The position numbers were made by a program, and so were the translations under genes. Of a stretch of 64,000 bases of DNA, positions 16,988 through 38,093 are shown one piece after another. The stretch is from positions 159,647 to 223,646 of the IMG/VR virus record IMGVR_UViG_3300042326_002445. One strand, given 5' to 3'. The notes beneath the pieces are model-generated. The model worked only from the letters and a program-made list of their open reading frames with translations. It did no database searches and was not told the DNA's origin. Numbering within the stretch: the first letter of the stretch is position 1; each line of letters opens with the position of its first letter.

Positions 16988-16992
16988 TTTTT

Positions 16993-18283: not shown

Positions 18284-18289
18284 TACAGT

Positions 18290-18883: not shown

Positions 18884-19004
18884 AAACAATCAAGTACAAA
18901 TCGATAAATGTGCTTTTAAGATATGGCTTAGTGGTTTTGTTGTAGGCGTGATACTAACTTTTTCTTTTGTTAGTTTGGTTATGGTGCTTAATGCTTGGCA
19001 TTAA
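18855..19004 (+). CDS. small single-pass membrane protein (not in ORF track)
   Basis: TTG start after GGGGAG; 49 aa with IWLSGFVVGVILTFSFVSLVMVL. Confidence 0.5.
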   Translation: MKNFRKTNLKNNQVQIDKCAFKIWLSGFVVGVILTFSFVSLVMVLNAWH

Positions 19005-19379: not shown

Positions 19380-19397
19380 ATTGGTAATTACCGTTAT

Positions 19398-20015: not shown

Positions 20016-20049
20016 ATATGATGTTTTGTCGAAAAAATATAACAATACT

Positions 20050-20793: not shown

Positions 20794-21561
20794 ATGAAAA
20801 TAGATAAAGTAATACACGCATGTGATGATAAAGATTTTTATCTTGACTTTTGGCCTATAGTATCAAAAATATGGCGTCTCAAATTTAATGTAGAACCAAT
20901 ATTGTTGCATTTTGGCAACAAAAATCCAACACAAGAGTTTGGCACAGTCATTAAGATGCCAATAATAAAAGATGTGCCTGTAAATACATTGTGCCAAATA
21001 TCTAGGTATTGGATACCATCTACAGATCTGAGTGCGACTTGGATGACCTCTGATATAGACATGATTCCAATATCAAGGCATTATTTTACTGGTTGGTTAA
21101 ATGATGTACCAAATGACAAATGGGTGCATCTGAATTCTGACAAGGGAGAGTCTCATCCGTATATAGTTTATCTATGTTGCTATAATGTAGCAAAAGGGCA
21201 AACATTTAAAGACATATTAGAACTGCCTGATAGTTTTGAGGATTTTGTAAATTTAGGATTTTGGAAAGAAAATACTCATAATTATACTCCTCATGGACTA
21301 TCCGGTTCTCTTCCCCATTGGGGCGCTGATGAAATGTGGTCAAGTAGAAAGCTAAATCAATACTCAGACCAATCAAGAATAGTAAGAAAATTTAGAGATT
21401 GTGGACCTCATGAATGTCACAGAATAGATCGCATTAACTGGGGATGGAATGATTCTGGTGTTACTTCAGAAGACTACTATGACTGTCATGCTGCGCGCCC
21501 TTATGAAAAGCACAAGGGCTCTATAGATAGACTTGTGGAGCTAATACTTAAAAATGTTTGA
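20794..21561 (+). CDS. putative GT-A glycosyltransferase
   Basis: SDIDMIP DxD motif; W..DE; in the glycan operon. Confidence 0.55.
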   Translation: MKIDKVIHACDDKDFYLDFWPIVSKIWRLKFNVEPILLHFGNKNPTQEFGTVIKMPIIKDVPVNTLCQISRYWIPSTDLSATWMTSDIDMIPISRHYFTGWLNDVPNDKWVHLNSDKGESHPYIVYLCCYNVAKGQTFKDILELPDSFEDFVNLGFWKENTHNYTPHGLSGSLPHWGADEMWSSRKLNQYSDQSRIVRKFRDCGPHECHRIDRINWGWNDSGVTSEDYYDCHAARPYEKHKGSIDRLVELILKNV

Positions 21562-22303
21562 CTTCGATTTAAAGTATGAAGACTTTGTATGGGGAGATAA
21601 GTTTTCCCAACTATCTAATATAAAATTTTTAAAGATAGATGACGCTTTTAGTTTTATACAAAGCAATACATCTGATGTCAATATAGTAAGTCACAACGGA
21701 GACTACCCGATAGATGGTAAGTTTGAAAATTATCAAAACAATTTTCCAAGATGGTATGGACAAAATATTGTTACTGGTTGCAATAAGTTTAAGCCTATTC
21801 CCATAGGATTGGAAAATGATTATGTTGCTAACTCTGTTGAAAAAAAGCATATGCTTTTAAATTTATCTAATTCTTCCAAGTCTGTGCGGCCTAATAAAAT
21901 GCTATATATCAATCATAATATTGGCACTAACTCTCATGAAAGGCAAGCTCCATACAATATTTTCAGCAACAGCAGCTGGTGTACTGTTGAGCACTCTGGC
22001 GGCTTTTCTTATCAGAGTATTTATTATTCAAAAATACTAGACCATACTTTTATGCTTAGTCCGCCCGGCAATGGTATAGATTGTCACAGAACTTGGGAGA
22101 TATTATATTTAAGAAGAATTCCTGTTCTTAAAAAAGTTGGTAGATTGCAAGAGCTGTATTCAGAACTTCCAGTCGTTTTTATTGATGCTTATGATCAGTT
22201 AAATGAATCTTTTTTAAGACAAGAGTTAAACTCATTAAGTAATAAGACTTTTAATTTTGAAAAATTAAAGTTCTCTTATTGGAAAAGTTTGGTGCAATCG
22301 TGA
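21554..22303 (+). CDS. exostosin/GT47-like glycosyltransferase
   Basis: LSPPGNGIDCHRTWEILYLRRIPV. Confidence 0.7.
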   Translation: MFDFDLKYEDFVWGDKFSQLSNIKFLKIDDAFSFIQSNTSDVNIVSHNGDYPIDGKFENYQNNFPRWYGQNIVTGCNKFKPIPIGLENDYVANSVEKKHMLLNLSNSSKSVRPNKMLYINHNIGTNSHERQAPYNIFSNSSWCTVEHSGGFSYQSIYYSKILDHTFMLSPPGNGIDCHRTWEILYLRRIPVLKKVGRLQELYSELPVVFIDAYDQLNESFLRQELNSLSNKTFNFEKLKFSYWKSLVQS

Positions 22304-22926
22304 TCAACATTAACAATTTTAGTGAATTAAAAATTAATTTTTTGATGAATAATGGTGATCCTGGATTCCATGGGGATGTAAGAATGATCGAAACTATGGA
22401 TGACATAATTAAAAAATGCGATCATTTTATAGAGACTGGTACTAGATACGGTAACACTCTTTTCTTTGTATCTAGAAATTACAACATTAAATGTTGGTCA
22501 TGCGAAATAGGAGACATGACGCCGCAAAGCGTTTATAATCACGATAATGTTTATTTTCAACAAATTAAGTCTCCTGATTTTTTATATTTTTTAGAAAAAA
22601 AGCACTCACATATATGCGAAAAAACTTGTGTTTTTTATCTTGATGCTCATAGTGATACAGAATCAGTCTGGGAAGAAGAGCTTGCATTTATATTAAAGAA
22701 TTTTAGTAAATTTTATATTGTTATAGATGATTTCAATATTATGAATGATAGTTTTTCTCATAATGGTTATAGTTTAAGCGTAGCAAAATCAATAATAAAA
22801 AATAGAGCTAAAATATATGTACCAGATTACAGAGAACAAACATCTGAGTTTCATTCTCTTACGGGATGGATTTTGATAACCAACATAGATGAATCGTTCA
22901 GAAACGTAAAGGAGCTATATGAGTAG
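22279..22926 (+). CDS. class I SAM methyltransferase-like protein
   Basis: FIETGTRYGNT, FYLDAH, IVIDDF. Confidence 0.65.
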   Translation: MEKFGAIVININNFSELKINFLMNNGDPGFHGDVRMIETMDDIIKKCDHFIETGTRYGNTLFFVSRNYNIKCWSCEIGDMTPQSVYNHDNVYFQQIKSPDFLYFLEKKHSHICEKTCVFYLDAHSDTESVWEEELAFILKNFSKFYIVIDDFNIMNDSFSHNGYSLSVAKSIIKNRAKIYVPDYREQTSEFHSLTGWILITNIDESFRNVKELYE

Positions 22927-23500
22927 ACAATTAGGAAAAAAAGAAACTTTTGATTTTTGGTTTAATAACAGAGAGTTTGACGAACATGATCAGTTTGGCA
23001 GCAAATACTATGTTAATGAGTTTTACAGCAGAATAGTTTCAAAGCTAGACATACCTAAGAGTGGATTCATCGTAGTAGCTGGAACAAATAGAGCTGTTTC
23101 TTTTGAAATTTTGTGTGATATATTTGGAAAAGATAGGTGCATAGGGTTTGATTTGTATAATCCTAATGGTCACGAAAGAGTTGTAATAAAAGATTGCATG
23201 CTTTTGTCTAAAGAAGACGACATTCCCATAGCATTTGCGCACAACGATGTTGGAAGTCTTTCTCATACTCCAGATGTAAAAATACACGCCCACAAATGGT
23301 TAACTAAAAATATTGTACCTGGTGGTTACGTTATGGGGAACAATAACTTGAATAGAGCAAAATTTAAATTTGAAGAATTTATGAAAGAAAACGGTTTTGA
23401 AAATACTAATTTTTGTGAATTAGACAGCAGCAAATTTGACCTTTCTTCTTTTCCAATAGAGAGAATAGAGGGGTATATGCTTTCGAGAAAGAATTTTTAA
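22919..23500 (+). CDS. putative methyltransferase-fold protein
   Basis: CIGFDLY, IAFAHND, IVPGGYV. Confidence 0.5.
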   Translation: MSRQLGKKETFDFWFNNREFDEHDQFGSKYYVNEFYSRIVSKLDIPKSGFIVVAGTNRAVSFEILCDIFGKDRCIGFDLYNPNGHERVVIKDCMLLSKEDDIPIAFAHNDVGSLSHTPDVKIHAHKWLTKNIVPGGYVMGNNNLNRAKFKFEEFMKENGFENTNFCELDSSKFDLSSFPIERIEGYMLSRKNF

Positions 23501-23501
23501 C

Positions 23502-24131
23502 ATGAATGCCATAAACTTTGATAAGTCTATTATGCAGCTTGTTTCTTATCCAAGAACCGGTAGTCACTATGTTCGCATAGTAATAGAAGACATTACAAAA
23601 AGGCCTTGTGCTCCTACTTCTTTTTTGGGTTTTGATAAATTTGAACCATGGGGGTTTCACCTGCATGACAGAATTGTGGGAAATGGAGATGAGGGCATAA
23701 CTTCTGGATTTGATAAAGTAATATACTTATATAGGAATCCAGTAGATACCATTTATTCACACATAAAATATCAGAATGAGAGCGATTGGAGATCAATAGC
23801 AGAAGAGTATAAAAATCATCTCATGAGATGGCTTTACAATAATCACGATTGTAAAAAAATGATTTTTGTTAATTATGACATATTGCTAGATAAGCCGATA
23901 AAAGAATTTAAAAGAATTTTAGAATTTATGGATTTCTCAGTCAATGATGATGATTTGCAAAAATCTATAAGCAGAACAACAATATCTAGAGTTAGGGCAT
24001 TAACGGAAAAGTTAGATAATAAAGTAGTAAGTCAAGATCATTTTAATGGTCAGTACTTAATCGATAAGTCAATTTTTATTTCAGAAAATTCAGAAGAAAT
24101 AAATAAAATGTTTCAAGGCATTTATAAATAA
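23502..24131 (+). CDS. PAPS-dependent sulfotransferase
   Basis: 5'-PSB loop SYPRTGSHYVR and 3'-PB motif YRNPVDTIYS. Confidence 0.8.
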   Translation: MNAINFDKSIMQLVSYPRTGSHYVRIVIEDITKRPCAPTSFLGFDKFEPWGFHLHDRIVGNGDEGITSGFDKVIYLYRNPVDTIYSHIKYQNESDWRSIAEEYKNHLMRWLYNNHDCKKMIFVNYDILLDKPIKEFKRILEFMDFSVNDDDLQKSISRTTISRVRALTEKLDNKVVSQDHFNGQYLIDKSIFISENSEEINKMFQGIYK

Positions 24132-25097
24132 ATGAAAATATATAAAAAAATAAACTTTATTGACTACAATATATCTCATGCGGAAACATGGAAACACGCT
24201 AGTATAATGTGCGGTTGCAGAGTTCCTAAAGATTTGATGCACAATTATTATACACCTCCAAATAATATATGGTTAAAAAAATGTAATAATTTTTTTGAAG
24301 ATGAAGTAAATTCTGGAATATCTGTATTCACAGACCATGCAATTGTGGAAGTGAATAAATACAGATCGCAACATAAAGTTGCTTTAATTTTAGAACCCCC
24401 AATTGAGGCAAGGGGTATTTATGAAAAAGCCGTCAGTCTTCAGAATAAATTTGAGATTATATTTACTTTTCGAAAAAAATTAATAGAAAAAAATCCTGAA
24501 AAATTCAAATTCATGCCAGCTGATTTTGTTACATTAGAAGATGATGCGCATAAAATTCATACAAAAAATAAACTGATCTCTATGATATATTCTGGTATGA
24601 GAGGTCACAATAGAGATCTTAGGCATCAGGTTGGTAATATTTTGAGCGACAAAATTACATTATTTGGTGGAGGTAGTCCAAGCGGAGATGTGCCTTTAAA
24701 ATCTGATACTTTAAAAGACTATATGTTTTCTGTAGTAATAGAAAATTCAAAACCTTTTGACTACTATTTTACTGAAAAAATATTAGATTGTTTCATAACA
24801 GGTAATATCCCTATATATAATGGCTCTCCATCAATAGGAGATTTTTTTGACAAAAGGGGATTTCTCACATGGTCGTCTATAGACGAACTTGCAAATATTA
24901 TTGATTCTATTTCAGAAGATAAATATTATGAAATGCTGCCTTATGTAAAAATAAATTATGAATTAGCAAAAAAGTACGTTAGTGCTGATGACGTAATGAG
25001 TGATTTAATTTATGAAGCACTTCACAATAAAACGATAAATACTATGGAAAGATTTATATACAAAAATTGGAGTAATAATGAAAATAATCAATTATGA
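24132..25097 (+). CDS. GT10 (alpha-1,3/4-fucosyltransferase-like)
   Basis: YMFSVVIENS..YYFTEKILDCFITGNIPIY. Confidence 0.8.
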   Translation: MKIYKKINFIDYNISHAETWKHASIMCGCRVPKDLMHNYYTPPNNIWLKKCNNFFEDEVNSGISVFTDHAIVEVNKYRSQHKVALILEPPIEARGIYEKAVSLQNKFEIIFTFRKKLIEKNPEKFKFMPADFVTLEDDAHKIHTKNKLISMIYSGMRGHNRDLRHQVGNILSDKITLFGGGSPSGDVPLKSDTLKDYMFSVVIENSKPFDYYFTEKILDCFITGNIPIYNGSPSIGDFFDKRGFLTWSSIDELANIIDSISEDKYYEMLPYVKINYELAKKYVSADDVMSDLIYEALHNKTINTMERFIYKNWSNNENNQL

Positions 25098-25782
25098 TAC
25101 AAGCAAGTATGGATTTAGAGACTTAGTTCAATCAATATATGATGTTGATTTGTCTAATCTTGATACAGTTGATGCAAAAAAGAATTTAACTTTAGGTAAT
25201 GATACAAAAACTTCACTACATAAAGAGTTTTATAAAAAAATAGATGCTGGTTGGCCAGAATTTATGAACTTATATACTTCTTTTGTATCAGAAGTTGTGC
25301 ACCCTATGTTTGAGGATGACGTTCTTGTTTATCAAAAAACTCCAGGCATAAGGTTTTGCAGACCTGGAGCTAAGGCGGTATATAAGTGGCACTCAGATGG
25401 AGATGCTGACCATAAGCACCCTCTTGGAGAAGTGAATGTGTTTTTGCCTTTGAACAAATGCTTCGACACAAATTCTGTATGGTTTGAGACTATACCTGGC
25501 ATGGGAGATTGGCGTCCACTAGAAATGGATTATGGTCAATTGTTTATAGGTTATTGGAATCAGTGCAGGCATGGAAACAAAGAAAATTCTACGGGAAAAA
25601 CGAGAGTCAGTTTTGATTTTAGAGTTATTCCAGGTTTTGCTTACGATGAAAATTGTACATTGCAGAGTTGCACAACTAAGCAAAAATTTGTTATTGGAAG
25701 TTATTATGAAAAGATAAAAAGAGATCCGACACCATCTATGTATGACCCAGTGGAAAATGCAAAACTAGGAGCAGCATGCTAG
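25078..25782 (+). CDS. StrG-like Fe(II)/2-oxoglutarate oxygenase-fold protein
   Basis: WHSD HxD motif, HGN, TRVSFDFR. Confidence 0.65.
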   Translation: MKIINYDTSKYGFRDLVQSIYDVDLSNLDTVDAKKNLTLGNDTKTSLHKEFYKKIDAGWPEFMNLYTSFVSEVVHPMFEDDVLVYQKTPGIRFCRPGAKAVYKWHSDGDADHKHPLGEVNVFLPLNKCFDTNSVWFETIPGMGDWRPLEMDYGQLFIGYWNQCRHGNKENSTGKTRVSFDFRVIPGFAYDENCTLQSCTTKQKFVIGSYYEKIKRDPTPSMYDPVENAKLGAAC

Positions 25783-26441
25783 ACCCAAATCAGTACGAAG
25801 CCAGTCTTCTCAAGCATATGATGAATCGGTATGATTTGAATGATCCATGGGAAGTCGTTGATACTTTTGAAAATATTATTGCTAGTTACTCTGGAAGTAA
25901 ATATGCAGTATCAGTTGACAATTGTACTGATGCCATGTTTTTGTGTCTTAAGTATTTAAAGGCTGATGGAGTGATTGAAATACCCAAAAGAACATATGTA
26001 TCTGTTCCATGTACAATTATAAATGCTGGCTGCAAAGTTAAATTTATTGATATAGCGTGGAGTGGAGCCTACAAGCTTAATCCTTACAATGTTTACGATT
26101 CAGCAACAAGAATGAAAAGAAACATGTACGTAGAAGACTCTTATTATTGTTTGTCTTTTCATAGGAGAAAGCATATACCGATAGGCAAAGGCGGAATGAT
26201 ATTGACTAATAATAAAGATGCCTATGAATGGTTTAAGGTTGTCAGATACGAGGGAAGACACATGGACAGGTTATACAAAGATGATCATTTTGATCAAATT
26301 GGATGGAATATGTATATGACTCCAGAACAGGCGGCAAAGGGCATATATTTATTCGATAAACATGTAGTCGATGACAACCCAGATTTAGAAACTTCTGGTA
26401 TACATAAGGACCTATCAGAATATTCCATTTTCACAGCTTGA
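25776..26441 (+). CDS. DegT/DnrJ/EryC1/StrS-family sugar aminotransferase, short form
   Basis: AVSVDNCTDAMFLCL, LSFHRRKHIPIGKGGMILT, GWNMYM; only 221 aa. Confidence 0.75.
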   Translation: MLDPNQYEASLLKHMMNRYDLNDPWEVVDTFENIIASYSGSKYAVSVDNCTDAMFLCLKYLKADGVIEIPKRTYVSVPCTIINAGCKVKFIDIAWSGAYKLNPYNVYDSATRMKRNMYVEDSYYCLSFHRRKHIPIGKGGMILTNNKDAYEWFKVVRYEGRHMDRLYKDDHFDQIGWNMYMTPEQAAKGIYLFDKHVVDDNPDLETSGIHKDLSEYSIFTA

Positions 26442-27199
26442 GGTTTAATATGTTCTCTAAAAAAGATGTAATTAAAAAAATATTGTTGACTTGTAGTTCA
26501 GCAAAGGAAGGTCATGTTCCAAGTGCGCTTTCTATATTGGATATTTTATATGTTGTATATAGAGACTACGTATCCTTAGAAAAAGGAAGATTTGTACTAT
26601 CAAAAGGTCATGCATCAATAGGGCTTTACGCAATTCTTGATTATTTTAGCATGCTTGAGGAGCCTATTGAAAACTTTTGTAAGTTTGATTCAAAACTTGG
26701 AGGACATCCATCTTGCAGACTTAATCATGTTGAATGCTCGACTGGATCATTAGGGCATGGTATGCCATTCGCTCTTGGAATGGCAATGAGTGAGAAAATC
26801 AAAGGTTCTGATAAAAAAGTTTTTACTATTATTGGAGATGGGGAATCGAACGAAGGGACTATATGGGAAACAGCCCTTCTTGCTAGCCATCATAAAGTAA
26901 ATAATTTCTGTTGCATATTAGATCATAATCATTCTACCGACAGGGCTCTTGATATAGGCAACATGATTCAAAAATTTAAATCCTTTGGTTGGATGTGCAG
27001 TAAAGTGAACGGTCATGATTTGACAAACTTATCTAAAGTTCTTAAGAAATCAGATCCTGAAAAGCCGCACTTCATACTCGCTCATACGGTAAAAGGAAAA
27101 GGCATTAAATGCATGGAGAACAATCCAGAATGGCATCATAAGTCTCCAAGTCAAATAGATTGTGATAACATGATTAAGGAATTATATGAAAGCGTCTAA
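26438..27199 (+). CDS. transketolase, N-terminal (ThDP-binding) subunit
   Basis: GHVPSALS, LSKGHA, STGSLGHG, GDGESNEG, HTVKGKG, WHH. Confidence 0.9.
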   Translation: MRFNMFSKKDVIKKILLTCSSAKEGHVPSALSILDILYVVYRDYVSLEKGRFVLSKGHASIGLYAILDYFSMLEEPIENFCKFDSKLGGHPSCRLNHVECSTGSLGHGMPFALGMAMSEKIKGSDKKVFTIIGDGESNEGTIWETALLASHHKVNNFCCILDHNHSTDRALDIGNMIQKFKSFGWMCSKVNGHDLTNLSKVLKKSDPEKPHFILAHTVKGKGIKCMENNPEWHHKSPSQIDCDNMIKELYESV

Positions 27200-28031
27200 G
27201 AGTTTAATTATTAATACTAGAGAATATGGCATGTTTTCTAGTCTTCTGCAAATTATAGATAATTTAAAGTTTTGCGAGCTTAATAATATGAAGCCAATAT
27301 TAAATATTGGTGATAAATTTTTGTATCGCGATGGTCCAGAAAACCCTTGGAGTCATTATTTTAAGCCTATCAATGACGGAGTCGCAGAGGGAGAAGTTTA
27401 CGAAGTTTCTCAGTTAACAAAAACAGCTAACTTCTTTCTAGAAAATTATGTGATGACTCAGCCATCCATTCATGACTATAGGCTAAAATTGTGGAATATG
27501 ATTGCAGACAGAGACGATCTTCTGGCTCATCGCCAGGACATAAAAGCAATGCTTGATAAGTACGTTAAGCCATTGCCTGCAATTACAGATGAAGTAAAGA
27601 AATTTGCCAAAAAACATTTTAAGAAAGATAGTGTTCTCTCAGTTCACATCAGAAGTACGGATTATAAGTTTGTGAATCTTCCCTTGCTTATAGATAGAAT
27701 CAAAAAGATTCAGCAGCAAAACAATTACGACAAGATATTTGTAGCTTCAGATAGCTTAGAGGCTATTATGGGTATATACAACGCATTTCCTAATGTTTGT
27801 TACTATGAAACTAATTTAAGGTGCGAAAAAATTGATTCGCCCAAGCCCCTGTGCCACATTGTATTTGGTCAAGACAAAATAAGGCATGGGAGAGACGCTA
27901 TTGTAGAGTGCCTACTACTTTCTAAGGGTAAAGAAATAGTGTGTATTAATTCTAACGTTGCTGGAATGGCTTGCTATCTAAATCCAGAAATGAAAATACA
28001 TTTAATGCAAAGACAAGTGCATGGGGGATGA
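27186..28031 (+). CDS. NodZ/GT23-like O-fucosyltransferase
   Basis: GMFS, VHIRSTD, FVASDS, L.LSKG...CINSNV. Confidence 0.6.
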   Translation: MKASKSLIINTREYGMFSSLLQIIDNLKFCELNNMKPILNIGDKFLYRDGPENPWSHYFKPINDGVAEGEVYEVSQLTKTANFFLENYVMTQPSIHDYRLKLWNMIADRDDLLAHRQDIKAMLDKYVKPLPAITDEVKKFAKKHFKKDSVLSVHIRSTDYKFVNLPLLIDRIKKIQQQNNYDKIFVASDSLEAIMGIYNAFPNVCYYETNLRCEKIDSPKPLCHIVFGQDKIRHGRDAIVECLLLSKGKEIVCINSNVAGMACYLNPEMKIHLMQRQVHGG

Positions 28032-28662
28032 TAAATTGGAAATGAGTCAAATTGTAAGTATTTCAGAATCTATAAGAAAAAAATTTCCCACTAGATGGGA
28101 GTGTCAAACTCCAAGAGAATTTTTTTACATGTATCATTTAATAGATGAGTGCAACAATATTGATGGAGCTTTTGCAGAAATAGGTGCTTATCAGGGTTTT
28201 ACAAGTGAATTTATTTTCTTAATTAAGAAAAAAGAAAAACGTTTTTTTGTCTGTGATACGTTTACTGGCTTGCGAGACGTTGGAGAGCATGACCGTTATT
28301 TAGATATACCTAATGGTGGTTTAAGTGTTGGAGTTGAAGAATTCTGCAACATGAATGATTTTGTCAAAGAAGAATCAGTTGCATTAATAAATGGATATTT
28401 TCCAGATTCTGCAACAAGTGAAATGAATAATTCTACTTATTCATTTGTTCATATTGATACTGATACTCATGACTCTACAAAAAATAGTTTACATTATTTT
28501 TATCCAAAAATGGCTCACGGTGGAAAAATTTTAGTTCACGATTATAGAAATCATCAAGGAACAAAAGGTGTTGCAAAAGCGGTTGATGATTTTATGATTG
28601 ATAAAGAAGATTCGCTTATGACACACGAAGACAGTACTCAAGCAATTATAACGAAAATATAA
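28021..28662 (+). CDS. TylF/MycF-type sugar O-methyltransferase
   Basis: GAFAEIGAYQG, CDTFTG, GYFPDS, VHIDTD, GGKILVHDY, GVAKAVDDF. Confidence 0.85.
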   Translation: MGDDKLEMSQIVSISESIRKKFPTRWECQTPREFFYMYHLIDECNNIDGAFAEIGAYQGFTSEFIFLIKKKEKRFFVCDTFTGLRDVGEHDRYLDIPNGGLSVGVEEFCNMNDFVKEESVALINGYFPDSATSEMNNSTYSFVHIDTDTHDSTKNSLHYFYPKMAHGGKILVHDYRNHQGTKGVAKAVDDFMIDKEDSLMTHEDSTQAIITKI

Positions 28663-28663
28663 A

Positions 28664-29539
28664 ATGAGAAAACAATTTGTAAAATCAATGAAAGAAATAC
28701 TGTACGGAGATATTGATTCCGTACTGTTACTGGGAGACATTGGAGTCTTTGGTTTTAGAGAAGAATTAAAAAATCTATCCAATAGAGCATACAACATCGG
28801 GATACTGGAGCAAGCGACTATCAGCTTAGCTGCAGGCATGGCTCGTGGCGGCTTGATCCCTTTTGTCCACACCATAGCTCCCTTTATGGTTGAACGCGCA
28901 TTGGAGCAAATAAAGGTCGATTTTGGATATCAAGAATTAAACGGTAATTTCATAAGTGTTGGAGCATCCTATGACTATGCCGGATTGGGCTGCACTCATC
29001 ATTGTCCTGGAGACATTCAGGGGCTCATGAGTATCCCAAATATAAATATATTTACACCGGGTTCTTCTAAGGAATTTGATAATCTATTAAAATTTTATTA
29101 TAAAAATAATGGACCAAAATATTTCAGATTGAGTGAATACGAAAACAATCTTTCTTTTGAATGCGAACCGGGAAGGGCATGCATAGTAAAAGAAGGCAGT
29201 CTCGCAACTATTGTTTGCTATGGACCAATATGCGATTCTGTTATGAGTGCATGTGATAATTTGGATGTTTGCATTTTGTATTACAACTCTATTTTGCCAT
29301 TTGATTCAGAAACTTTGAGTAATAGTTTTAATGAAAAAATTATAATATGTGAGCCTTTTTATGCTGGTACAACAAATTATTTAATTACGAATGCTCTACA
29401 AGGCAAAAAATATAGCCTATTCAATATAGGCGTCCCAAGAAGATTTCTTCATAATTATGGCGATAAAAAACAACACGATCAACATTTGTCTTTAGATGTT
29501 GAGGGTATAAGAAAAAGGATCAAAGAATGCTTAGTTTGA
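28664..29539 (+). CDS. transketolase, C-terminal subunit
   Basis: NIGILEQATISLAAGMA, RALEQIKVD, GCTHH, GPKYFRL. Confidence 0.9.
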   Translation: MRKQFVKSMKEILYGDIDSVLLLGDIGVFGFREELKNLSNRAYNIGILEQATISLAAGMARGGLIPFVHTIAPFMVERALEQIKVDFGYQELNGNFISVGASYDYAGLGCTHHCPGDIQGLMSIPNINIFTPGSSKEFDNLLKFYYKNNGPKYFRLSEYENNLSFECEPGRACIVKEGSLATIVCYGPICDSVMSACDNLDVCILYYNSILPFDSETLSNSFNEKIIICEPFYAGTTNYLITNALQGKKYSLFNIGVPRRFLHNYGDKKQHDQHLSLDVEGIRKRIKECLV

Positions 29540-30558
29540 TAAAAGAAGAATGCAAAGATATTGTAAACAAAATTGATTTTTCTTCCTTAAAAGGAAAAAG
29601 AGTTCTTATCACTGGAGCATCTGGAATAGTTGGTGTCTACATGGTTGCATGTCTTAAGAATATTAGTAGGCAATATAATATAGATATTTTTTGCTGGATA
29701 AATAATGATGTAGACCCGGTGTTCGAAGATCTGTATGATGGGTGTGCGATTATAAAGGGTGATATATGCGATGATGGGCTGCTAGATTCAGTCTATAAAG
29801 ATTTGTGTGAAACTCTAAGTGGATTTGATCTTATAATACATGCTGCAGGGTATGCTCAACCCAATAAGTTTTTAGAAAATAAGATTAAAACTATACAGCT
29901 CAATACCACATCAACAGCAAAGCTATTCAAAATGTTGAATAAAGACGGTACTTTTGTATTTATGAGTACCAGTGAACTCTATAGTGGCATAGATCATGAT
30001 AACATATCTGAGGACGATATAGGAACATCGTCTACTAATCATCCTAGATCTTGTTATATTGAAGGAAAAAGATGTGGAGAAGCTATTTGCCATGCTTACT
30101 CGAAGGATCACAATATAAAAATTATGAGGCTTAGTTTAGCTTACGGTCCAGGCACAAAGCATAATGATCAAAGAGTGTTGAACTCATTATTTCAAAAAGC
30201 TTTTCAGACAGGTAAAATAAATCTATTAGATAGTGGGTCTTCAACCAGAACATACGGCTATATTTCAGACATCACTGAAATGATGTGGAACGTAATTTTG
30301 TTTGGTAAAGAATCAGTATATAATATGGCTGGAGACTCTAAGACTAGCATACGCGAATTGGCTGAAATAATAGGGAGTCTTACAGGCGTCCCAGTTACAA
30401 TACCTTCAAGTGACGACAATCAACTTTTAGGCACACCAAAAAATGTAAACTTAAGTTTAAATAGATATTTTAATGAATTTAATCACATCAATTTTGTACC
30501 CCTCCATGAAGGCTTAAGAAGAACAATGGAGTGGCAGAAAGGTCTATATGTCAAATAA
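29527..30558 (+). CDS. NAD-dependent nucleotide-sugar epimerase/dehydratase (SDR)
   Basis: ITGASGIVG, STSELY, CYIEGKR YxxxK. Confidence 0.85.
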   Translation: MLSLIKEECKDIVNKIDFSSLKGKRVLITGASGIVGVYMVACLKNISRQYNIDIFCWINNDVDPVFEDLYDGCAIIKGDICDDGLLDSVYKDLCETLSGFDLIIHAAGYAQPNKFLENKIKTIQLNTTSTAKLFKMLNKDGTFVFMSTSELYSGIDHDNISEDDIGTSSTNHPRSCYIEGKRCGEAICHAYSKDHNIKIMRLSLAYGPGTKHNDQRVLNSLFQKAFQTGKINLLDSGSSTRTYGYISDITEMMWNVILFGKESVYNMAGDSKTSIRELAEIIGSLTGVPVTIPSSDDNQLLGTPKNVNLSLNRYFNEFNHINFVPLHEGLRRTMEWQKGLYVK

Positions 30559-31465
30559 AATAAGCCCAGATCATTTTTCCAATATATTAGGTTTTAGCAT
30601 TGACACTACAGTTGCTAAAAAAATAGAGCAATTTGATCTTCAATATCAGGATCTGACAGAGCAAGAGATGAACGACTACCTAATTAGGGTCGTAGATGTA
30701 TTGACGGGAGATATCGTAAAAAGTGGAGCTCATAGAATAGATGATTGGGAAAAAGGCTGGGGTGAAAACTTAGATCTTTATAGGCAAACAAAAGATATAA
30801 ACTCTCTTGTGCCAAAATATCATTGTAAAAATAGATATGTAAGATGGATGGGAAAGATAGTCAATCCAATCACTCCAGCTTTCGATTATAAAATACATAT
30901 ATGCTTTATTGATGCAATCTTGCATCATTATTTAAAAGATGGATATACAAGTGTGTATGAATTTGGATGTGGTCCCGGATATCATCTTTTAAGGCTTCGT
31001 AATGATAGGCCAGATTTAGACCTTACTGGACTTGATTGGGCAAAGTCTTCACAAGACCTTATACGGGAAATCAGTACCTCTTTATCAAAGCCAATTAATG
31101 CACACAATCTGGATTTCTTTAAACCAGATTACAATTTTGATATTAATGAAAACAGTATCGCATACACTGTAGCTGCATTAGAACAAACGGGTAGCAACTA
31201 CATTAAATTCGTTGACTATTTACTTGATAAGAAGCCAGCTTTGTGTATAAATATGGAACCAATAGCTGAGCTTTTAGATGAAACTAAATTAATTGACAAT
31301 CTTTCTATAAAGTATTTTAGAAAAAGAAATTATTTACATGAATATTTAACTCATCTAGAATGGCTTGAGTCAATTGGTAAAATCAAAATAATTGATAAGA
31401 GAAGAATATATAGCGGTAGCTATTTTATTGAGGGTCATTCTCTAGTAGTTTGGAAACCAATTTAA
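30548..31465 (+). CDS. class I SAM methyltransferase
   Basis: YEFGCGPG, LTGLDW, YTVAALEQ. Confidence 0.75.
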   Translation: MSNKISPDHFSNILGFSIDTTVAKKIEQFDLQYQDLTEQEMNDYLIRVVDVLTGDIVKSGAHRIDDWEKGWGENLDLYRQTKDINSLVPKYHCKNRYVRWMGKIVNPITPAFDYKIHICFIDAILHHYLKDGYTSVYEFGCGPGYHLLRLRNDRPDLDLTGLDWAKSSQDLIREISTSLSKPINAHNLDFFKPDYNFDINENSIAYTVAALEQTGSNYIKFVDYLLDKKPALCINMEPIAELLDETKLIDNLSIKYFRKRNYLHEYLTHLEWLESIGKIKIIDKRRIYSGSYFIEGHSLVVWKPI

Positions 31466-32358
31466 CTCATAATATCTTGCATGATAATTTTGATTGGATT
31501 GTAAGAGTTAAGATAAAGATCTTTAGCATGATTAATGCTGTAGTCTTCTAAGCGTTTTTGGCTATTTATTATATCTTTTATCCTATCTATCTCTCTTCCA
31601 TCATATTCAATATATTCAAATGCATTAGGATAAAATTTTTCTATATCTCTATGCCCATTGTATATTGGTATTGTATTGCATAATATTGCATCTATAAATT
31701 TTTCACTTATGTTCCCACTTACGCAAGAGTTTTCAAGACATATGGAATATTTATATTCAGATAATCCTGAAATCTTATTCATCAAAGGTCCCCTGTATCG
31801 TTTATCGCTCAGGTTCCATCCTCTTCCATACATGTCAAATTCTATATCAGAATTTAAAAGTTTCGTTACTAGCTCTCTTCTTTTATTGTAATTTGTATAT
31901 GACCTATTGTCTACAGGCGCATTTGAAACAATAATGGAGAGTGTTTTTGTTTTATTAAATTGTGATGTTAATATTTTTTTAGTAGTTTCTGATGAAGGCT
32001 GAATTTCTCCACTGCCATCTGGATTTGCATCATAAAGTCTGTGAGTTCCAAGAAGAGGCGACCATATTGTTCTTCCGTTTTCGTATTTATTTGTTTCATA
32101 TGTAACAATCTTTTTGCAATAAGAAAGCATGTTTTTATCAAAATTTTCAGACCAATAAGGCTCTATTACAATTCCATAAGTTTTATCTTTTTCAATTCTG
32201 TATGATGGATTGTGCACATAGTTCATTATTACTAAATGAGTATAGTCGTCTTGATGAGTTAAAACATCGCTGTAGCTACCATCGTGGTTCCATATATCGT
32301 TGATAAAACGATATATGTTATAGTCACTATTCCAGTAGCCAGCAAATTTTATTTTCAT
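31462..32358 (-). CDS. GT10 fucosyltransferase-like
   Basis: YKYSICLENS..SGNISEKFIDAILCNTIPIY. Confidence 0.75.
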   Translation of the reverse strand: MKIKFAGYWNSDYNIYRFINDIWNHDGSYSDVLTHQDDYTHLVIMNYVHNPSYRIEKDKTYGIVIEPYWSENFDKNMLSYCKKIVTYETNKYENGRTIWSPLLGTHRLYDANPDGSGEIQPSSETTKKILTSQFNKTKTLSIIVSNAPVDNRSYTNYNKRRELVTKLLNSDIEFDMYGRGWNLSDKRYRGPLMNKISGLSEYKYSICLENSCVSGNISEKFIDAILCNTIPIYNGHRDIEKFYPNAFEYIEYDGREIDRIKDIINSQKRLEDYSINHAKDLYLNSYNPIKIIMQDIMS

Positions 32359-32990
32359 TCTTTTCCTTGTATCTCACTAACATATGTTCCGTTTTGCGAT
32401 CCTTGTGTCATTATTCCAGGCTCATACCAATACACAATAGTATTAAGTTTTATAAATCTATAATTTAAATCAAAATCTATTGGCAAGTGAGCTTTTCCAT
32501 TTTTCATGTCTTCATATACTTTTTGTGCAGCTTTTGGATGGACTATCATGCTATCTGTGCATTTTGTCTTCCACCTATTTGGACATTTTACAAAACCTTC
32601 GCCTTCTGTGCGTATCCCACATCCAGTACCAAAAAAACAAAATTCCCAGTCTTCTGGTATATTATTAAAATTATATACAAAATTATCTAATGTTTCTGGG
32701 TTAAATATTACGTCATCTTCTAGTATCATTGAAGCCTGTCCGCTGTCTGCAATCTTTTTAAATGTTCTAAATTGCTTATGTATGAGAGACTTATTTCCTT
32801 TGTTTATCTCTACAGCAGGAAAGTCTTCTGGAAGTATTGCTCTTTTTTCAGGTATGCTTGAAAATTCTATTTCACTGCTTTCTGACGTTACTACTTCCAA
32901 ATCTTCTAAAAACTTACATTGCATTAACAAGCCTGTGACTTTTAAGAATCTTTCAGTAAAACCTTTTTTGTGCATTAAAAAAACTTTCAT
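32355..32990 (-). CDS. GT25-like glycosyltransferase
   Basis: SLIHKQ, MILEDD, LPIDFDL, QGS. Confidence 0.65.
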   Translation of the reverse strand: MKVFLMHKKGFTERFLKVTGLLMQCKFLEDLEVVTSESSEIEFSSIPEKRAILPEDFPAVEINKGNKSLIHKQFRTFKKIADSGQASMILEDDVIFNPETLDNFVYNFNNIPEDWEFCFFGTGCGIRTEGEGFVKCPNRWKTKCTDSMIVHPKAAQKVYEDMKNGKAHLPIDFDLNYRFIKLNTIVYWYEPGIMTQGSQNGTYVSEIQGKE

Positions 32991-33111
32991 TATACTCTCC
33001 TTGATATTTTATAATGATTATATTATATTTTACGGCATTACTGATTTAAATACTGTTTGTTTTACTGCGCATTTAATAAAATATGACGAAATAGGTATGG
33101 GTGACTAAATT

Positions 33112-33945
33112 ATGCTTTTATCAATATTGGTTCCAGGCAAAAATGACAACTTTAGATACAATGGTTCAAAAACCATTGAATTTAATATTAATCAAACTTT
33201 AGATAATATAGAATATTCTGGGTTTAAAGATGTAGAACTCGTATTGTGCGATTGGGGTAGTGAGAAGAAAATAGTAGATGAAATAGTTAAAAGAAAACAT
33301 AAGAATTTTAAATGTGTTTATGTTCCCCCAGATATAGCACAAAAATATAATGGTCAGGCAAATTATTCTATAGTGCATCCAATTAACACTGCATTTAGGC
33401 ATAGCTCTGGTAAATATGTATGCTTCTGGGATTCTGATTGCTTTGTGCTTCAAGATAGCTTTGTAAAGCTTTATGAGTTTGTTCTTCAAATGGAAGCTAC
33501 TCAAGACATGCAATTTTATTGGGGTTCTAGATATCATATACCGTATGAATCCTATAATGATTTAAGAAGTCATAAAGAATTAGTTGCAAAAATAAATAAT
33601 GGTATGCAAGTTATGCATGATAAAATAGCTGGAGGAGGTAAATTTATGGGAGCCTCTATATCATTGTTAATGAACAGAATTTTATGGGAGGATAGTACTG
33701 GATGGTATGAAAATCTTCCGTATTGGGGATGGCAGGATATTGAGTTCCACCATCGCTTGATGAAGAGATACAGCTATGGCGGCGATCTGGAAGATTGGGG
33801 CATGAGTTTTTTTCACATGCTTCAGCCTGCCAGTAAAGACGGCACAAAAAATAAGCACTTGATGAATCCCTCAATAAACGCAACATTCTTTAAAGCTAAT
33901 CCTCCAAGTTGGGGTTTAGCAAATGAGAAATTGGAAATAATGTAA
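33112..33945 (+). CDS. GT2-like glycosyltransferase, tandem copy 1
   Basis: LCDWGS, WDSD DxD, WGWQDIEF. Confidence 0.7.
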   Translation: MLLSILVPGKNDNFRYNGSKTIEFNINQTLDNIEYSGFKDVELVLCDWGSEKKIVDEIVKRKHKNFKCVYVPPDIAQKYNGQANYSIVHPINTAFRHSSGKYVCFWDSDCFVLQDSFVKLYEFVLQMEATQDMQFYWGSRYHIPYESYNDLRSHKELVAKINNGMQVMHDKIAGGGKFMGASISLLMNRILWEDSTGWYENLPYWGWQDIEFHHRLMKRYSYGGDLEDWGMSFFHMLQPASKDGTKNKHLMNPSINATFFKANPPSWGLANEKLEIM

Positions 33946-34297
33946 TGATATTATCCATATTAATCCCTGGTAAAAATGATGATTTTCGATGCAATGGTAC
34001 AAAAACAATAGAATTTAATTTGAATCAAGTTTTGGATAATCTTGAATTTTTTAACTTTCCAGATTTAGAGTTAGTGCTTTGTGATTGGGGAAGTAAAAAG
34101 AAAATAGTAGGATCAATATTGGAAAGAAAACACAAAAACTTTAAATGCGTTTATGTCAGACCAAGCGTTGCTAAAAAATATAATGGTAAGGCGAATTATT
34201 CTATAGTACATCCAATTAATACTGCATTTAGGCATAGCTCTGGTAAATATGTATGCTTCTGGGATTCTGATTGCTTTGTGCTTCAAGATAGCTTTGT
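33388..34297 (+). repeat. 77-nt perfect direct repeat (33388-33464 and 34221-34297) between the tandem GT paralogs
   Basis: actgcatttagg...gatagctttgt is identical in both copies, 833 nt apart; a second identical tract of about 38 nt lies at the 3' ends. Confidence 0.9.
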
Positions 34298-34784
34298 CAA
34301 GCTATACGAGTTTGTTCATCAAATGAATATAAATTCTGATAAAAAATTTTACTGGGGATCTAGATGGCATATATCTTATGATGAATATACGTATCTATCT
34401 TCTCACAAAGATTTATTAGAAAAAATAAACAATGGTCTTCAGCCATCAAGAAAAGACTCATTTGACTATGGTCAAAATTTTATGGGTGGTTCTATATCGC
34501 TCTTGATGGACAGGTCAATATGGGAAGAAAGTACAGGTTGGTATGAGAAATTGCCCTATTGGGGATGGCAGGACATTGAGTTTCACAGAAGATTGTTGAC
34601 CAAATATGTTCAGGGTGAAGATCTTGTTTCGCATGGAATGGTATTTTATCATTTAAATCAACCAGAAAAAATGGATAAATTACAAAATAAACACAAATTT
34701 AATGAGCAAATAAATGCAAAATCTTTTAAAGCTAATCCTCCAAGTTGGGGTTTAGCAAATGAAAAATTGGAGATAATAGAATGA
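33945..34784 (+). CDS. GT2-like glycosyltransferase, tandem copy 2
   Basis: Same motifs; clear paralog of 33112..33945. Confidence 0.7.
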   Translation: MILSILIPGKNDDFRCNGTKTIEFNLNQVLDNLEFFNFPDLELVLCDWGSKKKIVGSILERKHKNFKCVYVRPSVAKKYNGKANYSIVHPINTAFRHSSGKYVCFWDSDCFVLQDSFVKLYEFVHQMNINSDKKFYWGSRWHISYDEYTYLSSHKDLLEKINNGLQPSRKDSFDYGQNFMGGSISLLMDRSIWEESTGWYEKLPYWGWQDIEFHRRLLTKYVQGEDLVSHGMVFYHLNQPEKMDKLQNKHKFNEQINAKSFKANPPSWGLANEKLEIIE

Positions 34785-35527
34785 GCGTTTTAGTGAATTA
34801 TACAGGAAGGCTTGGTAACAATATTCTGCAATATTGCATGGCAAGTTATTTATCCTATAAGTTTGACCTTTCTTTGCATAAATCTTTAGATTTAAATGAA
34901 GACTTTGAAATCAATCAGAAAGAAGGCGGAAGATCATTCGAAAATCATATTGAAGTAAATGATGATAATTTACAAGAAATACTCGCCAGAAAAAGTATAG
35001 ATTCTGGCATAAGAGTTAACGGCTGGTTTTCAAGCAAATATGTTTTTGAAAATGAAGAAATAATTTCTTATTACAAAAAGTGCATTGTCCCAAAAAAGAT
35101 AGACAATCCAACAGATTTATTTGTGCATGTCCGACTTGGAGACATCGACAAACAATTTAATCTGCCATATAAATACTACAAATATCAAATTTCTAAAATT
35201 GATTATAATGATTGTTTTTTAACTAGTGATAGCATAAGTCATCGCATAGTTAAAGATTTGCAAAAAAGATTCAAAAATATTCAGTTGTTTACTGGATGTA
35301 GTCCAAGTTTTACTATTAGGTACGGCGCTAATTGTGATAAGCTTGTCTTAAGTTCTGGTACTTTTAGTCTTTGTATGGCACTTTTTAATAGAGGTGCTCC
35401 AAATGTTTATTGCATAGATAATTATTCAATGGAAAAATATTTTAAAATAAAGCAATGGGATGGTGGGGGATTCTCTGCTTTTATTGGCAAGTCTAATTTT
35501 AATTTTTACAATGAGAGTAAAGCATGA
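34781..35527 (+). CDS. GT11-like (alpha-1,2-fucosyltransferase-like)
   Basis: GRLGNNILQY, HVRLGD, LSSGTFS. Confidence 0.7.
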   Translation: MSVLVNYTGRLGNNILQYCMASYLSYKFDLSLHKSLDLNEDFEINQKEGGRSFENHIEVNDDNLQEILARKSIDSGIRVNGWFSSKYVFENEEIISYYKKCIVPKKIDNPTDLFVHVRLGDIDKQFNLPYKYYKYQISKIDYNDCFLTSDSISHRIVKDLQKRFKNIQLFTGCSPSFTIRYGANCDKLVLSSGTFSLCMALFNRGAPNVYCIDNYSMEKYFKIKQWDGGGFSAFIGKSNFNFYNESKA

Positions 35528-36429: not shown

Positions 36430-36433
36430 AATT

Positions 36434-37375: not shown

Positions 37376-37377
37376 AT

Positions 37378-38076: not shown

Positions 38077-38093
38077 TTTAAGGTAATTATTTT

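Follow-up and report, generated by a model that had tools for sequence, protein, structure and literature searches.

The 64,000-nt stretch of DNA analysed here (from here: the window) is the end of a 224 kb IMG/VR virus record (IMGVR_UViG_3300042326_002445) from a large uncultured phage. Eight coupled genes, named A to H, lie on the + strand at positions 25078-31465. The following features of the window are relevant:

25078..25782 (+), A: PhyH-type Fe(II)/2-oxoglutarate (2OG) dioxygenase, 234 aa
25776..26441 (+), B: conserved mini-DegT protein, 221 aa
26438..27199 (+), C: N-terminal (ThDP diphosphate-binding) subunit of a split transketolase (TK)-like enzyme
27186..28031 (+), D: GT23/GT65-like, GDP-fucose-type glycosyltransferase (tentative)
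28021..28662 (+), E: TylF-family (sugar O-)methyltransferase
28664..29539 (+), F: C-terminal (pyrimidine-binding) subunit of the split TK-like enzyme
29527..30558 (+), G: UXS-like extended SDR
30548..31465 (+), H: class I SAM-dependent methyltransferase
35524..36429 (+): GDP-L-fucose-synthase-like 3,5-epimerase/4-reductase (Fcl-like SDR)
50899..51894 (+): GDP-mannose 4,6-dehydratase (GMD)
12217..42295 (strand not given): surrounding island of soluble glycan enzymes

Gene content of the locus

The observation made in the first-pass annotation, a coupled run of a StrG-like oxygenase, a short DegT aminotransferase, a two-subunit TK, an SDR and two methyltransferases, was confirmed as far as the presence of these gene types is concerned, with the oxygenase identified only as of the 2OG/Fe(II) type. 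Two corrections have to be made. The TK subunits are not adjacent but separated by genes D and E, and gene D had been missed. Seven of the eight junctions are overlaps of 4-20 nt and one is a gap of 1 nt. All genes tested are under purifying selection against diverged relatives (dN/dS 0.05-0.17, or dS saturated), and an identical copy occurs in a second metagenome sample (L001).

Protein A possesses an HxD...H triad and an RxS motif, with H105, D107, H165, R176 and S178 invariant in 30 homologues. An AF2 model (pLDDT 89) showed a PhyH-type fold, and Foldseek searches yielded AndA, SptF, SyrB2 and EvdMO1, while a weak tail hit was obtained to TIGR04324. Protein B matches PF01041 (E 4e-21) in two pieces. 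Alignment to full-length relatives showed that it keeps the SFHxxK lysine but lacks the C-terminal domain and an internal segment of about 50 aa. Its best PDB match is 8VR3/8VR5, and it is 77% identical in the locus L004, with dN 0.15 and dS saturated.

Protein C matches Transketolase_N (PF00456, 102.5 bits, E 3e-29) and protein F Transket_pyr (PF02779, E 4e-17). The best PDB matches of both are the chains of a split TK, 6YAK for C (E 9e-42) and 6YAJ, the C chain, for F. The assignment of D is at the level of a lead only. Its Atlas neighbours are NodZ/FUT8/O-FucT proteins, relatives carry PF05830 or PF19745 and an HxRxxD motif is conserved, but a profile search of the PDB listed POFUT1, NodZ, POFUT2 and FUT8 only weakly (E 0.01-0.6). 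Protein E matches PF05711 (E 1e-13) and PF13578 (Methyltransf_24), and in other lineages the same slot is occupied by MT24 or FkbM methyltransferases.

[quoted passage not shown] The AF2 model (pLDDT 91.6) has an N-terminal helix before strand 1, and the top Foldseek hits are 2B69, 8V4G/H, 8VR2 and EvdS6. G is likely a ketoreductase or, alternatively, the maker of the 4-keto acceptor. Protein H contains a GCGPG motif and an N-terminal extension of about 125 aa. Its Atlas neighbours are methyltransferases (score 0.99), whereas methyltransferase hits in NCBIfam and the PDB were faint.

The island of about 30 kb contains GT2 enzymes (one of 798 aa), GT25, a sulfotransferase, three GT10, one GT11, FkbM methyltransferases and a GalE-like SDR, as identified by Pfam scans. 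No transmembrane segment was detected in the 41 ORFs between 11.4 and 44.3 kb. The Fcl-like SDR matches human GDP-L-fucose synthase (E 7e-63) and NF047922 with 209 bits, below the cut-off of 500 bits, and keeps residues S107, C109, Y136, K140 and H179 of E. coli Fcl and the full GMER catalytic set. The GMD scored 414.2 bits against TIGR01472 (cut-off 415) and is 47% identical to E. coli Gmd.

Conservation of the cassette in viruses and bacteria

The conserved core consists of C, F and G. It recurs in 52-53 of 55 IMG/VR contigs, some of them unambiguously from T4-like phages with gp45, gp44, RegA and RNaseH nearby, and in about 70 of 79 bacterial MAG loci from more than 12 phyla. G directly follows the C-terminal TK subunit in 52 of 55 viral and about 70 of 79 bacterial loci. 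Homologues of H, a frequent fifth gene of the cassette, occur in 39 of 79 bacterial and 23 of 55 viral loci. In contrast, A and B were found only in the lineage of the window and in L004, and are therefore accessory genes of unknown role.

In bacteria, the cassette often follows wzm-wzt and sits with GMD, ColD-like 3-dehydratases, Fcl-like SDRs, methyltransferases and GT10/GT11, and the counterpart of the Fcl-like SDR directly follows G. GMD is located within 7 kb of the TK in 18 of 55 viral loci and in 20 of the other 90 loci. The ColD-like neighbours have ColD as the best PDB match (E 2e-59), and 44 of 46 full-length DegT-family neighbours carry His at the PLP-lysine position, which makes them ColD-type dehydratases and not aminotransferases. 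On plasmid p2 of Azospirillum sp. TSA2s the order is GMD, Fcl-like, an unidentified 251-aa gene, N-terminal TK subunit, C-terminal TK subunit, methyltransferase. These neighbours are frequent but not universal, as some loci hold only both TK subunits, G and H.

The cassette TKs have an altered substrate pocket

All cassette TKs keep the ThDP and catalytic residues, corresponding to H26, H66, H100, D155, N185, H261, R358, E411 and H473 of E. coli TktA. However, three sugar-phosphate-binding residues are replaced in every cassette member (H461 to G, D469 to L and R520 to E), while housekeeping TKs from genomes that carry the cassette keep H, D and R at these positions. The cassette-bearing genomes also encode ordinary TKs, separated by a score gap (>=239 versus <=120 bits). 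The cassette TKs form a clade that is split from housekeeping TKs by a branch with SH-aLRT 100, hence they do not cluster with the latter, the outcome that had been set beforehand as speaking against a role in nucleotide-sugar tailoring.

Comparison to known systems

The YerE/YerF pair of CDP-yersiniose A biosynthesis, together with ErwE and other YerE-like enzymes, also combines a ThDP enzyme with a ketoreductase in O-antigen-type loci, next to a PMP-dependent 3-dehydratase (E1 there, ColD-like here) and a 4,6-dehydratase that make a (3,)6-deoxy-4-keto NDP-sugar. YerE and other ThDP branching enzymes act on 3,6-dideoxy-4-keto NDP-sugars (PMC12247030). YerE, however, belongs to the decarboxylase (acetolactate-synthase-like) ThDP family, uses pyruvate and works on CDP-sugars, whereas here the context is GDP-mannose-derived and the enzyme is a split TK, whose conserved donor histidines suggest a hydroxylated C2 unit. 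Pfam gave no TPP_enzyme_N/M match, and TPP_enzyme_C fell below its cut-off.

Split-gene TKs have been proposed to transfer a hydroxyacetyl unit onto a keto sugar for the branched sugars of miharamycin and amipurimycin (PMC12247030). These are 13 putative Streptomyces sequences in antibiotic clusters, none characterised in vitro. The clade reported here sits in cell-surface or virion glycan loci, and the nearest Streptomyces split TK found is only about 34% identical. The housekeeping split TK of Carboxydothermus hydrogenoformans (6YAK/6YAJ) shares the two-chain architecture, the ThDP motif and the catalytic Glu and His residues, but the cassette enzyme forms a distant clade and has the three replacements.

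G shares the UXS-like extended SDR fold and the STxE, RxxYxxxK and DxR motifs with HS5.17 of Campylobacter jejuni HS:5 and human UDP-xylose synthase, and the N-terminal helix before the Rossmann fold with HS5.17 (PMC10918830). Identity is only about 25%, there is no partner cytidylyltransferase, and neither known enzyme has a TK as partner. The GDP-colitose/GDP-fucose pathways share GMD, ColD-like His-type dehydratases and Fcl-like (ColC/Fcl) epimerase/reductases with the surroundings of the cassette, but the classical pathways contain no ThDP enzyme and no UXS-like SDR, and in the window itself the DegT-family member is a truncated Lys-type protein. We found no published description of the cassette.

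Discussion

The interpretation given in the first-pass annotation was partly supported. Its central inference, a TK-type ThDP enzyme serving nucleotide-sugar tailoring rather than the pentose phosphate pathway, is supported by four independent lines of evidence: the neighbourhood conserved in about 130 loci, the separate clade in genomes that also hold ordinary TKs, the three uniformly replaced residues, and neighbours that make NDP-4-keto sugars, GMD and ColD-like 3-dehydratases. The proposed formation of an amino sugar was not supported, in view of the truncation of B and the His-type DegT-family neighbours in relatives. Membership of A and B in the core was not supported either.

Among the alternatives, it is possible but doubtful that G is a UXS/ArnA/Pcryo_0617-type oxidative decarboxylase converting an NDP-hexuronate into an NDP-4-keto-pentose, which would then be the TK acceptor or, in this lineage, the substrate of B. 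Human UDP-glucuronate decarboxylase ranks first in Foldseek, with 8VR2 (an oxidoreductase/decarboxylase), EvdS6 and ArnA also ranking high, and the STSE, YxxxK and D-x-R motifs are shared with UXS. The best PDB match of B (8VR3/8VR5) has a PDB code neighbouring that of 8VR2, a G-like enzyme from Psychrobacter Pcryo_0617, but that they belong to one pathway is a guess. The locus L003 carries a UDPG_MGDP_dh gene upstream, yet no sugar 6-dehydrogenase exists in the window, where the ORF at 3569-4741 is GMP reductase, and none appears among the frequent bacterial neighbours. The recurrent neighbours are GMD, ColD-like and Fcl-like genes instead, and G carries the helix described for the reductase HS5.17. 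Less likely, the TK and G act on an open-chain sugar linked to a nucleotide through its terminal phosphate, as in CDP-6-fructose, making an NDP-alditol or an unusual NDP-ketose to supply an alditol-phosphate substituent rather than a branched pyranose. The ligand-contacting residues of CDP-6-D-glucitol synthase (E140, R164, R208) align with G (PMC10918830), and loss of H461 and R520 with retention of R358 would suit a diphosphate-nucleoside tail at the mouth of the TK channel. However, there is no cytidylyltransferase in the window and CTP_transf_3 occurs in only 7 of 79 bacterial loci, the neighbouring transferases are of GDP-fucose type, and GMD and ColD-like neighbours point to pyranose 4-keto sugars.

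Two further readings are improbable. Two-component TK systems feed glycolyl units to carrier proteins in some natural-product pathways, and a non-sugar C2 substituent, for example a glycolyl or glyceryl-type group later attached to a sugar, might be made in a similar way. The donor-side histidines are conserved, and distant split-TK relatives sit in secondary-metabolite contexts (R. fascians Fas2/Fas3 and S. clavuligerus), but no carrier protein, acyltransferase or ligase is conserved next to the cassette, and the conserved partner is a nucleotide-sugar SDR. The least likely possibility is an ordinary auxiliary metabolic TK boosting the pentose phosphate pathway of the host during infection. 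Pfam and NCBIfam name both halves transketolase, and phages carry pentose-phosphate genes such as transaldolase. This is contradicted by the replaced phosphate and stereo-determining residues, the separate clade, the coexisting ordinary TKs, the constant embedding in glycan loci and NCBIfam scores far below the equivalog cut-offs (195 against 488).

We favour, with no more than moderate confidence, a GDP-sugar analogue of the YerE/YerF pair. While gene content, conservation of the C-F-G trio, separation from housekeeping TKs, the altered phosphate pocket and the GDP-6-deoxyhexose neighbourhood were demonstrated by our analysis, the chemistry, including acceptor, donor and branch position, the role of G and the target of glycosylation are inferences. 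Several points argue against this reading. The acceptor is inferred from neighbours that are frequent but not universal, and the 224 kb record lacks a ColD-like gene. The Fcl-like enzyme keeps its epimerase and reductase residues, implying a free 4-keto substrate that a C4 branch would consume, so the order of steps remains tentative or two sugars may be made. G is as close to decarboxylating UXS-type enzymes as to the ketoreductase HS5.17. One phosphate contact may persist through R358, and TK channels are narrow, so that the fit of a pyranose 4-ketone is an assumption.

In this view, C and F together form a split, TK-type ThDP carboligase that has been recruited from sugar-phosphate metabolism into nucleotide-sugar tailoring. 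The GMD of the phage or host would make GDP-4-keto-6-deoxy-D-mannose, from which in many relatives a ColD-like PMP enzyme would remove the 3-OH. The split TK would load a two-carbon dihydroxyethyl (glycolaldehyde) unit on ThDP from a ketol donor and add it to the C4 ketone of the GDP-sugar, giving a 4-C-hydroxyacetyl branch, as the TK counterpart of YerE. G would reduce the new side-chain ketone, as YerF does; its closest solved relative reduces the same HOCH2-C(=O)- group in CDP-6-fructose. H and/or E would then O-methylate the product, and fucosyltransferase-like enzymes (D, GT10, GT11) would transfer the sugar in the cytoplasm onto virion proteins or host glycan intermediates. The cassette, widespread in bacteria and phages, would thus most likely build an undescribed two-carbon-branched sugar.

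Genomic setting

The window is the last 64 kb of a single-contig IMG/VR virus record of 223,646 bp, which is linear, was rated 55% complete by CheckV and has a GC content of about 0.33. Gp23, the NCLDV capsid, PolB and 16S rRNA were searched for in this 224 kb fragment and were not found, and PHROG scans of ten ORFs upstream of the window gave only helicases and an ATPase. The type of virus is hence indicated only by the 'virus' label of IMG/VR and by the Uroviricota-labelled Atlas neighbours. Close relatives of genes in the region are located on contigs of 370-420 kb. Upstream of the window (contig positions 371-152899), at a coding density of 98%, there are thirteen ORFs of more than 1200 aa, the largest comprising 5596, 3965, 3947 and 3286 aa. 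The two of these that were scanned (1245 and 1776 aa) had no PHROG match; they are possible giant fibre or surface proteins and candidate acceptors of the glycan.

From about 12 to 42 kb the window encodes roughly 40 soluble enzymes, and no membrane segment was detected among the 41 ORFs examined. This glycan island (12217-42295) is rich in families better known from eukaryotes (GT10, GT11, GT25 and Sulfotransfer_1, plus Fringe at 20268-20765 of the related locus L004). It contains GT2, GT25, GT10 (three copies) and GT11 glycosyltransferases, a sulfotransferase, FkbM methyltransferases and a GalE-like SDR, but no flippase, polymerase or ABC exporter. Assembly on a cytoplasmic acceptor, such as virion proteins or the cytoplasmic face of host intermediates, is inferred as the simplest reading. 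Other features of the window are:

3569-4741 (+), GMP reductase (NF003470, 347 bits), initially considered a UDP-glucose dehydrogenase
8307-8394 and 16917-16987, single tRNA-Ser and tRNA-Gln genes, the tRNA-Gln lying inside the glycan island
33112-33945 and 33945-34784, tandem duplicate GT2 genes, 70% identical to each other
35524-36429, GDP-L-fucose-synthase-like (Fcl-like) SDR
44993-46003 (- strand), PurZ-like adenylosuccinate-synthetase homologue (phrog_1211, E 2e-71)
46144-46477 (- strand), tight cluster of four tRNA genes (Tyr, Thr, Asn and a Ser with the unusual anticodon ACT)
50899-51894, GDP-mannose 4,6-dehydratase (GMD)
56000-64000, rise in GC content from about 0.33 to 0.47 over the last 8 kb
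63792-63990, 78-bp tandem repeat at the contig end, encoding HEAT-like NPNATPEVL repeats

Together, the PurZ-like protein and the GMP reductase hint at purine rerouting, possibly a 2-aminoadenine (Z) genome.

Gene content of the cassette

Eight + strand genes (A to H) fill positions 25078-31465, with seven junctions being overlaps of 4-20 nt and one a 1-nt gap. The run of gene types listed in the first-pass annotation is thus confirmed, although that annotation had overlooked gene D and the fact that the two transketolase (TK) halves are not adjacent. The genes are, in order:

A, PhyH-type Fe(II)/2OG dioxygenase (234 aa)
B, DegT-family remnant (221 aa)
C, N-terminal half of a split transketolase (TKN)
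D, fucosyltransferase-like protein, a tentative assignment
E, TylF-type methyltransferase
F, C-terminal half of the split transketolase (TKC)
G, UXS-like extended SDR
H, class I methyltransferase with an N-terminal extension

Searches of the PDB with the sequences of D, H and A gave nothing significant, and their family assignments come from Atlas features, Pfam hits of relatives, motifs and a fold model. Protein A has an invariant H105-x-D107...H165 iron triad and the 2OG site R176-x-S178, a confident model (pLDDT 89) matches PhyH-type enzymes with a jelly-roll fold, and one relative carries PF05721. Protein B keeps the PLP-binding lysine in the SFHxxK motif (SFHRRK at residues 127-132) but is not a complete two-domain DegT/DnrJ/EryC1 sugar aminotransferase of about 360-390 aa, since the C-terminal domain and an internal segment are absent. 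It is 77% conserved in a diverged relative with saturated dS, so it is not a decaying pseudogene. For C and F, PF00456 and PF02779 score above their cut-offs and the best PDB matches are 6YAK and 6YAJ. The assembly of both chains into one enzyme is inferred from this homology and from co-occurrence in 53 of 55 loci.

Occurrence in phages and bacteria

The TK N-subunit has a very large set of 55-85% identical relatives in metagenomes. The neighbourhoods of seven of them and a pattern scan of IMG/VR gave 55 viral contigs, among which TKN is present in 53, G in 52, an Fcl-like SDR in 33, a DegT-family gene in 27 and H in 23. Several of these contigs are unmistakably T4-like, with gp45, gp44, RegA, RNaseH and dUTPase next door. 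One contig labelled viral (IMGVR_UViG_3300032214_000867; loci L008 and L148) carries an OprB/SLH porin and a ferritin gene a few kb from the cassette and may be cellular (cyanobacterial) DNA or a phage with host-like genes. A scan of one genome per prokaryote species found 79 loci, all in MAGs or SAGs of more than 12 phyla, at 46-58% identity. TKN-TKC-G is again the rule in these loci, commonly followed by an Fcl-like SDR (37-43% identical to that of the window) and by H. In a Syntrophorhabdaceae chromosome (L077), the TKN-TKC pair is present twice (8240-9882 and 12660-14300), 4.4 kb apart, with identical TKC proteins.

The cassette often directly follows wzm and a wzt that carries a Wzt_C carbohydrate-binding domain, in about 18 of the bacterial loci (within L015-L083), which suggests that the product could be a chain-terminal residue read by the exporter. 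GT10, GT11, DUF268 methyltransferases and B12-radical SAM genes lie nearby. The slot between TKN and TKC (27186-28662 in the window, also in loci L002, L004, L008, L125, L128, L129 and others) holds a methyltransferase of a different family in different lineages (TylF, Methyltransf_24 or FkbM), sometimes with a fucosyltransferase-like gene, and is either an insertion hot spot or a functional link. In contrast, A and B occur only in the window's own lineage and in L004.

No DNA match to the region was found in INPHARED, and a protein search with TKN gave only hits of 37% identity or less, mostly bacterial contamination, so no cultured phage in this collection carries the cassette, and no isolate phage in GenBank has a close homologue. 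Hits on plasmids are only 34-40% identical and sit in other contexts, such as the fas operon and Streptomyces clusters, with plasmid p2 of Azospirillum sp. TSA2s as the nearest cultured analogue.

The cassette enzyme is distinct from housekeeping transketolases

Five genomes with the cassette also encode ordinary TKs, the scores falling from >=239 bits to <=120 bits. In a maximum-likelihood tree of the C-subunit, the cassette clade is separated from housekeeping TKs by a long branch with SH-aLRT 100, hence the clustering with housekeeping enzymes that had been named beforehand as a refutation was not observed. The window sits in a 7-member viral-like subclade with support 99, and the tree does not follow bacterial taxonomy. 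The best NCBIfam score is 194.7 bits against an equivalog cut-off of 488.

The cassette pairs were aligned to E. coli TktA, to two full-length TKs and to one housekeeping split TK from cassette-bearing genomes. In all 19 cassette pairs aligned, the equivalents of the catalytic and donor-binding histidines H26, H66, H100, H261 and H473, the ThDP/metal-binding GDG-N motif (D155, G156, N185), R358 and the cofactor-activating E411 are kept, except for one Q at H66 in a single MAG, while H461 is replaced by Gly, D469 by Leu and R520 by Glu. Two independent alignments agree, and the HMMER alignment to 6YAJ shows the same three replacements. In transketolases, H461 and R520 together with R358 hold the substrate phosphate, and D469 reads the C2 hydroxyl. 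Judged from the sequence, the cofactor and donor chemistry is therefore intact, while the sugar-phosphate clamp is dismantled, although R358 is retained. More distant split TK-like pairs, including those of Azospirillum p2, a Desulfobaculum plasmid, R. fascians Fas2/Fas3 and S. clavuligerus, share the loss of H461 and R520.

The cassette enzyme does not have the TPP_enzyme_N/M/C architecture of YerE-like ThDP lyases, the only match being a sub-threshold PF02775 hit of 21.7 bits against a cut-off of 21.9. Neither does it resemble best the alpha-keto acid dehydrogenase E1 pair of the AviB1/AviB2 type, as E1_dh scores 35 bits compared to 102.5 for Transketolase_N, and PDH E1 beta has an E value of 8e-4 only.

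Neighbouring genes point to GDP-mannose-derived sugars

The recurrent neighbours point to GDP-mannose-derived 4-keto-6-deoxyhexoses. GMD orthologues lie within 7 kb of the TK in 18 of 55 viral loci and in 20 of 90 other loci, and one lies in the window itself. The full-length DegT-family neighbours in relatives are closest to ColD, the GDP-4-keto-6-deoxymannose 3-dehydratase (E 2e-59), followed by the CDP-hexulose 3-dehydrase E1, and 44 of 46 carry His where aminotransferases have the PLP lysine, the hallmark of ColD and E1. This does not apply to B of the window, which has Lys. The cassette Fcl-like SDR keeps all five catalytic residues of E. coli GDP-fucose synthase (S107, C109, Y136, K140 and H179). 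However, the NCBIfam score of the enzyme at 35524-36429 is 209 against a cut-off of 500, so it may be a paralogue with another substrate. The transferases nearby are of GDP-fucose type, namely GT10, GT11 and the NodZ/FUT8-like D. On Azospirillum sp. TSA2s plasmid p2, a distant version reads GMD, Fcl-like, X (an unidentified 251-aa gene), TKN, TKC, methyltransferase, GT61, Fcl-like. This is the GDP-sugar mirror of the yersiniose logic, in which a 4,6-dehydratase and a PMP 3-dehydratase are combined with the ThDP enzyme YerE and the reductase YerF (PMC12247030).

By sequence, the best solved relative of G is the C. jejuni HS5.17 CDP-6-D-glucitol synthase (E 4e-30), closely followed by human UDP-xylose synthase. 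HS5.17 reduces the HOCH2-C(=O)- end of CDP-6-fructose, and its ligand contacts E140, R164 and R208 align with residues in G (PMC10918830). A confident model of G (pLDDT 91.6) has a helix at residues 2-15 before the first strand, the unusual feature described for HS5.17, whereas Foldseek ranks UXS1, HS5.17, the Pcryo_0617 oxidoreductase/decarboxylase and EvdS6 almost equally. CDP-alditol synthases of the HS5.17/Mnp2 type are paired with a PF01128 sugar-phosphate cytidylyltransferase, but no such gene was found among the 29 predicted proteins between 17.7 and 43.2 kb of the island scanned with Pfam, a scan that left out several small ORFs there and everything upstream of 17.7 kb. The only cytidylyltransferase-type neighbour seen among the bacterial loci is CTP_transf_3 (PF02348, not PF01128), in 7 of 79 loci.

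Proposed pathway and alternatives

In the model that we favor, GDP-mannose would be converted by GMD, and in many relatives, but not seen in the DNA of this record, a ColD-like enzyme would remove the 3-OH. The split TK would then add a glycolaldehyde unit at C4, G would reduce the new side-chain ketone, H and/or E would methylate the product, and fucosyltransferase-like GTs would transfer it. The analysis establishes the anatomy of the cassette, its conservation, the separation from housekeeping TKs, the altered pocket and the GDP-6-deoxyhexose context, while the acceptor, the donor, the branch position, the role of G, the glycosylation target and the catalysis itself are inferred. We are highly confident that the TK serves glycan tailoring rather than central metabolism, but the specific C4-branching model is only about as likely as not.

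Alternatively, G might not be the reductase of the hydroxyacetyl branch that a TK would create, which is our preference, but a UXS/ArnA-like generator of a 4-keto acceptor, the main rival in view of the nearly equal structural ranking. A redox-neutral variant is also conceivable, in which G would oxidise C4, the TK would branch, and the NADH of G would reduce the branch. Moreover, the intact epimerase/reductase residues of the cassette Fcl-like enzyme imply a free 4-ketone somewhere in the pathway, so the step order may differ, or two sugars may be made.

The interpretation in the first-pass annotation, a transketolase serving nucleotide-sugar tailoring rather than the pentose phosphate pathway, was partly supported: it holds in its core, but there is no good case for the amino sugar that it had considered, and A and B are accessory.

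Relation to known enzymes and significance

The cassette enzyme would work like YerE/YerF but is not a member of that family by domain architecture. It is a transketolase by fold and cofactor site, but differs from EC 2.2.1.1 in the substrate clamp, the score thresholds and the phylogeny. ThDP-dependent branching of nucleotide sugars is known only from YerE-like and E1-like enzymes, and TK-type branching remains an untested proposal for a handful of Streptomyces antibiotic clusters (PMC12247030). The nearest published idea is the split TK proposed for miharamycin and amipurimycin, for which a recent review counts only 13 putative sequences, all from Streptomyces. Literature searches on transketolases in connection with O-antigen, capsule, fucosyltransferase, phage or colitose and on a 4-C-dihydroxyethyl sugar found no description of the cassette or of such a sugar.

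A more far-reaching reading, which is possible but tentative, is that this would be the first transketolase-type enzyme family forming a C-C bond on a nucleotide-activated keto sugar. It would make a so far undescribed GDP-linked 4-C-(1,2-dihydroxyethyl)-6-deoxy (or 3,6-dideoxy) hexose, often methylated. In this view, the family is used across many bacterial phyla, frequently next to wzm-wzt as a possible O-polysaccharide building block or cap, and large aquatic phages have captured it to decorate virions or remodel the host surface.

Here, a distinct clade of split TKs with a rebuilt substrate pocket turns out to be common in uncultured bacteria, including Patescibacteria, Verrucomicrobiota, Omnitrophota and Proteobacteria, and in T4-like and larger phages. 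If the model holds, it would define a new, testable route to C-branched sugars and supply a ready enzyme family for the biocatalytic synthesis of tertiary alcohols. It would also predict an unknown monosaccharide in many environmental cell surfaces and show phages carrying complete pathways for exotic sugars, which bears on host recognition and superinfection exclusion.
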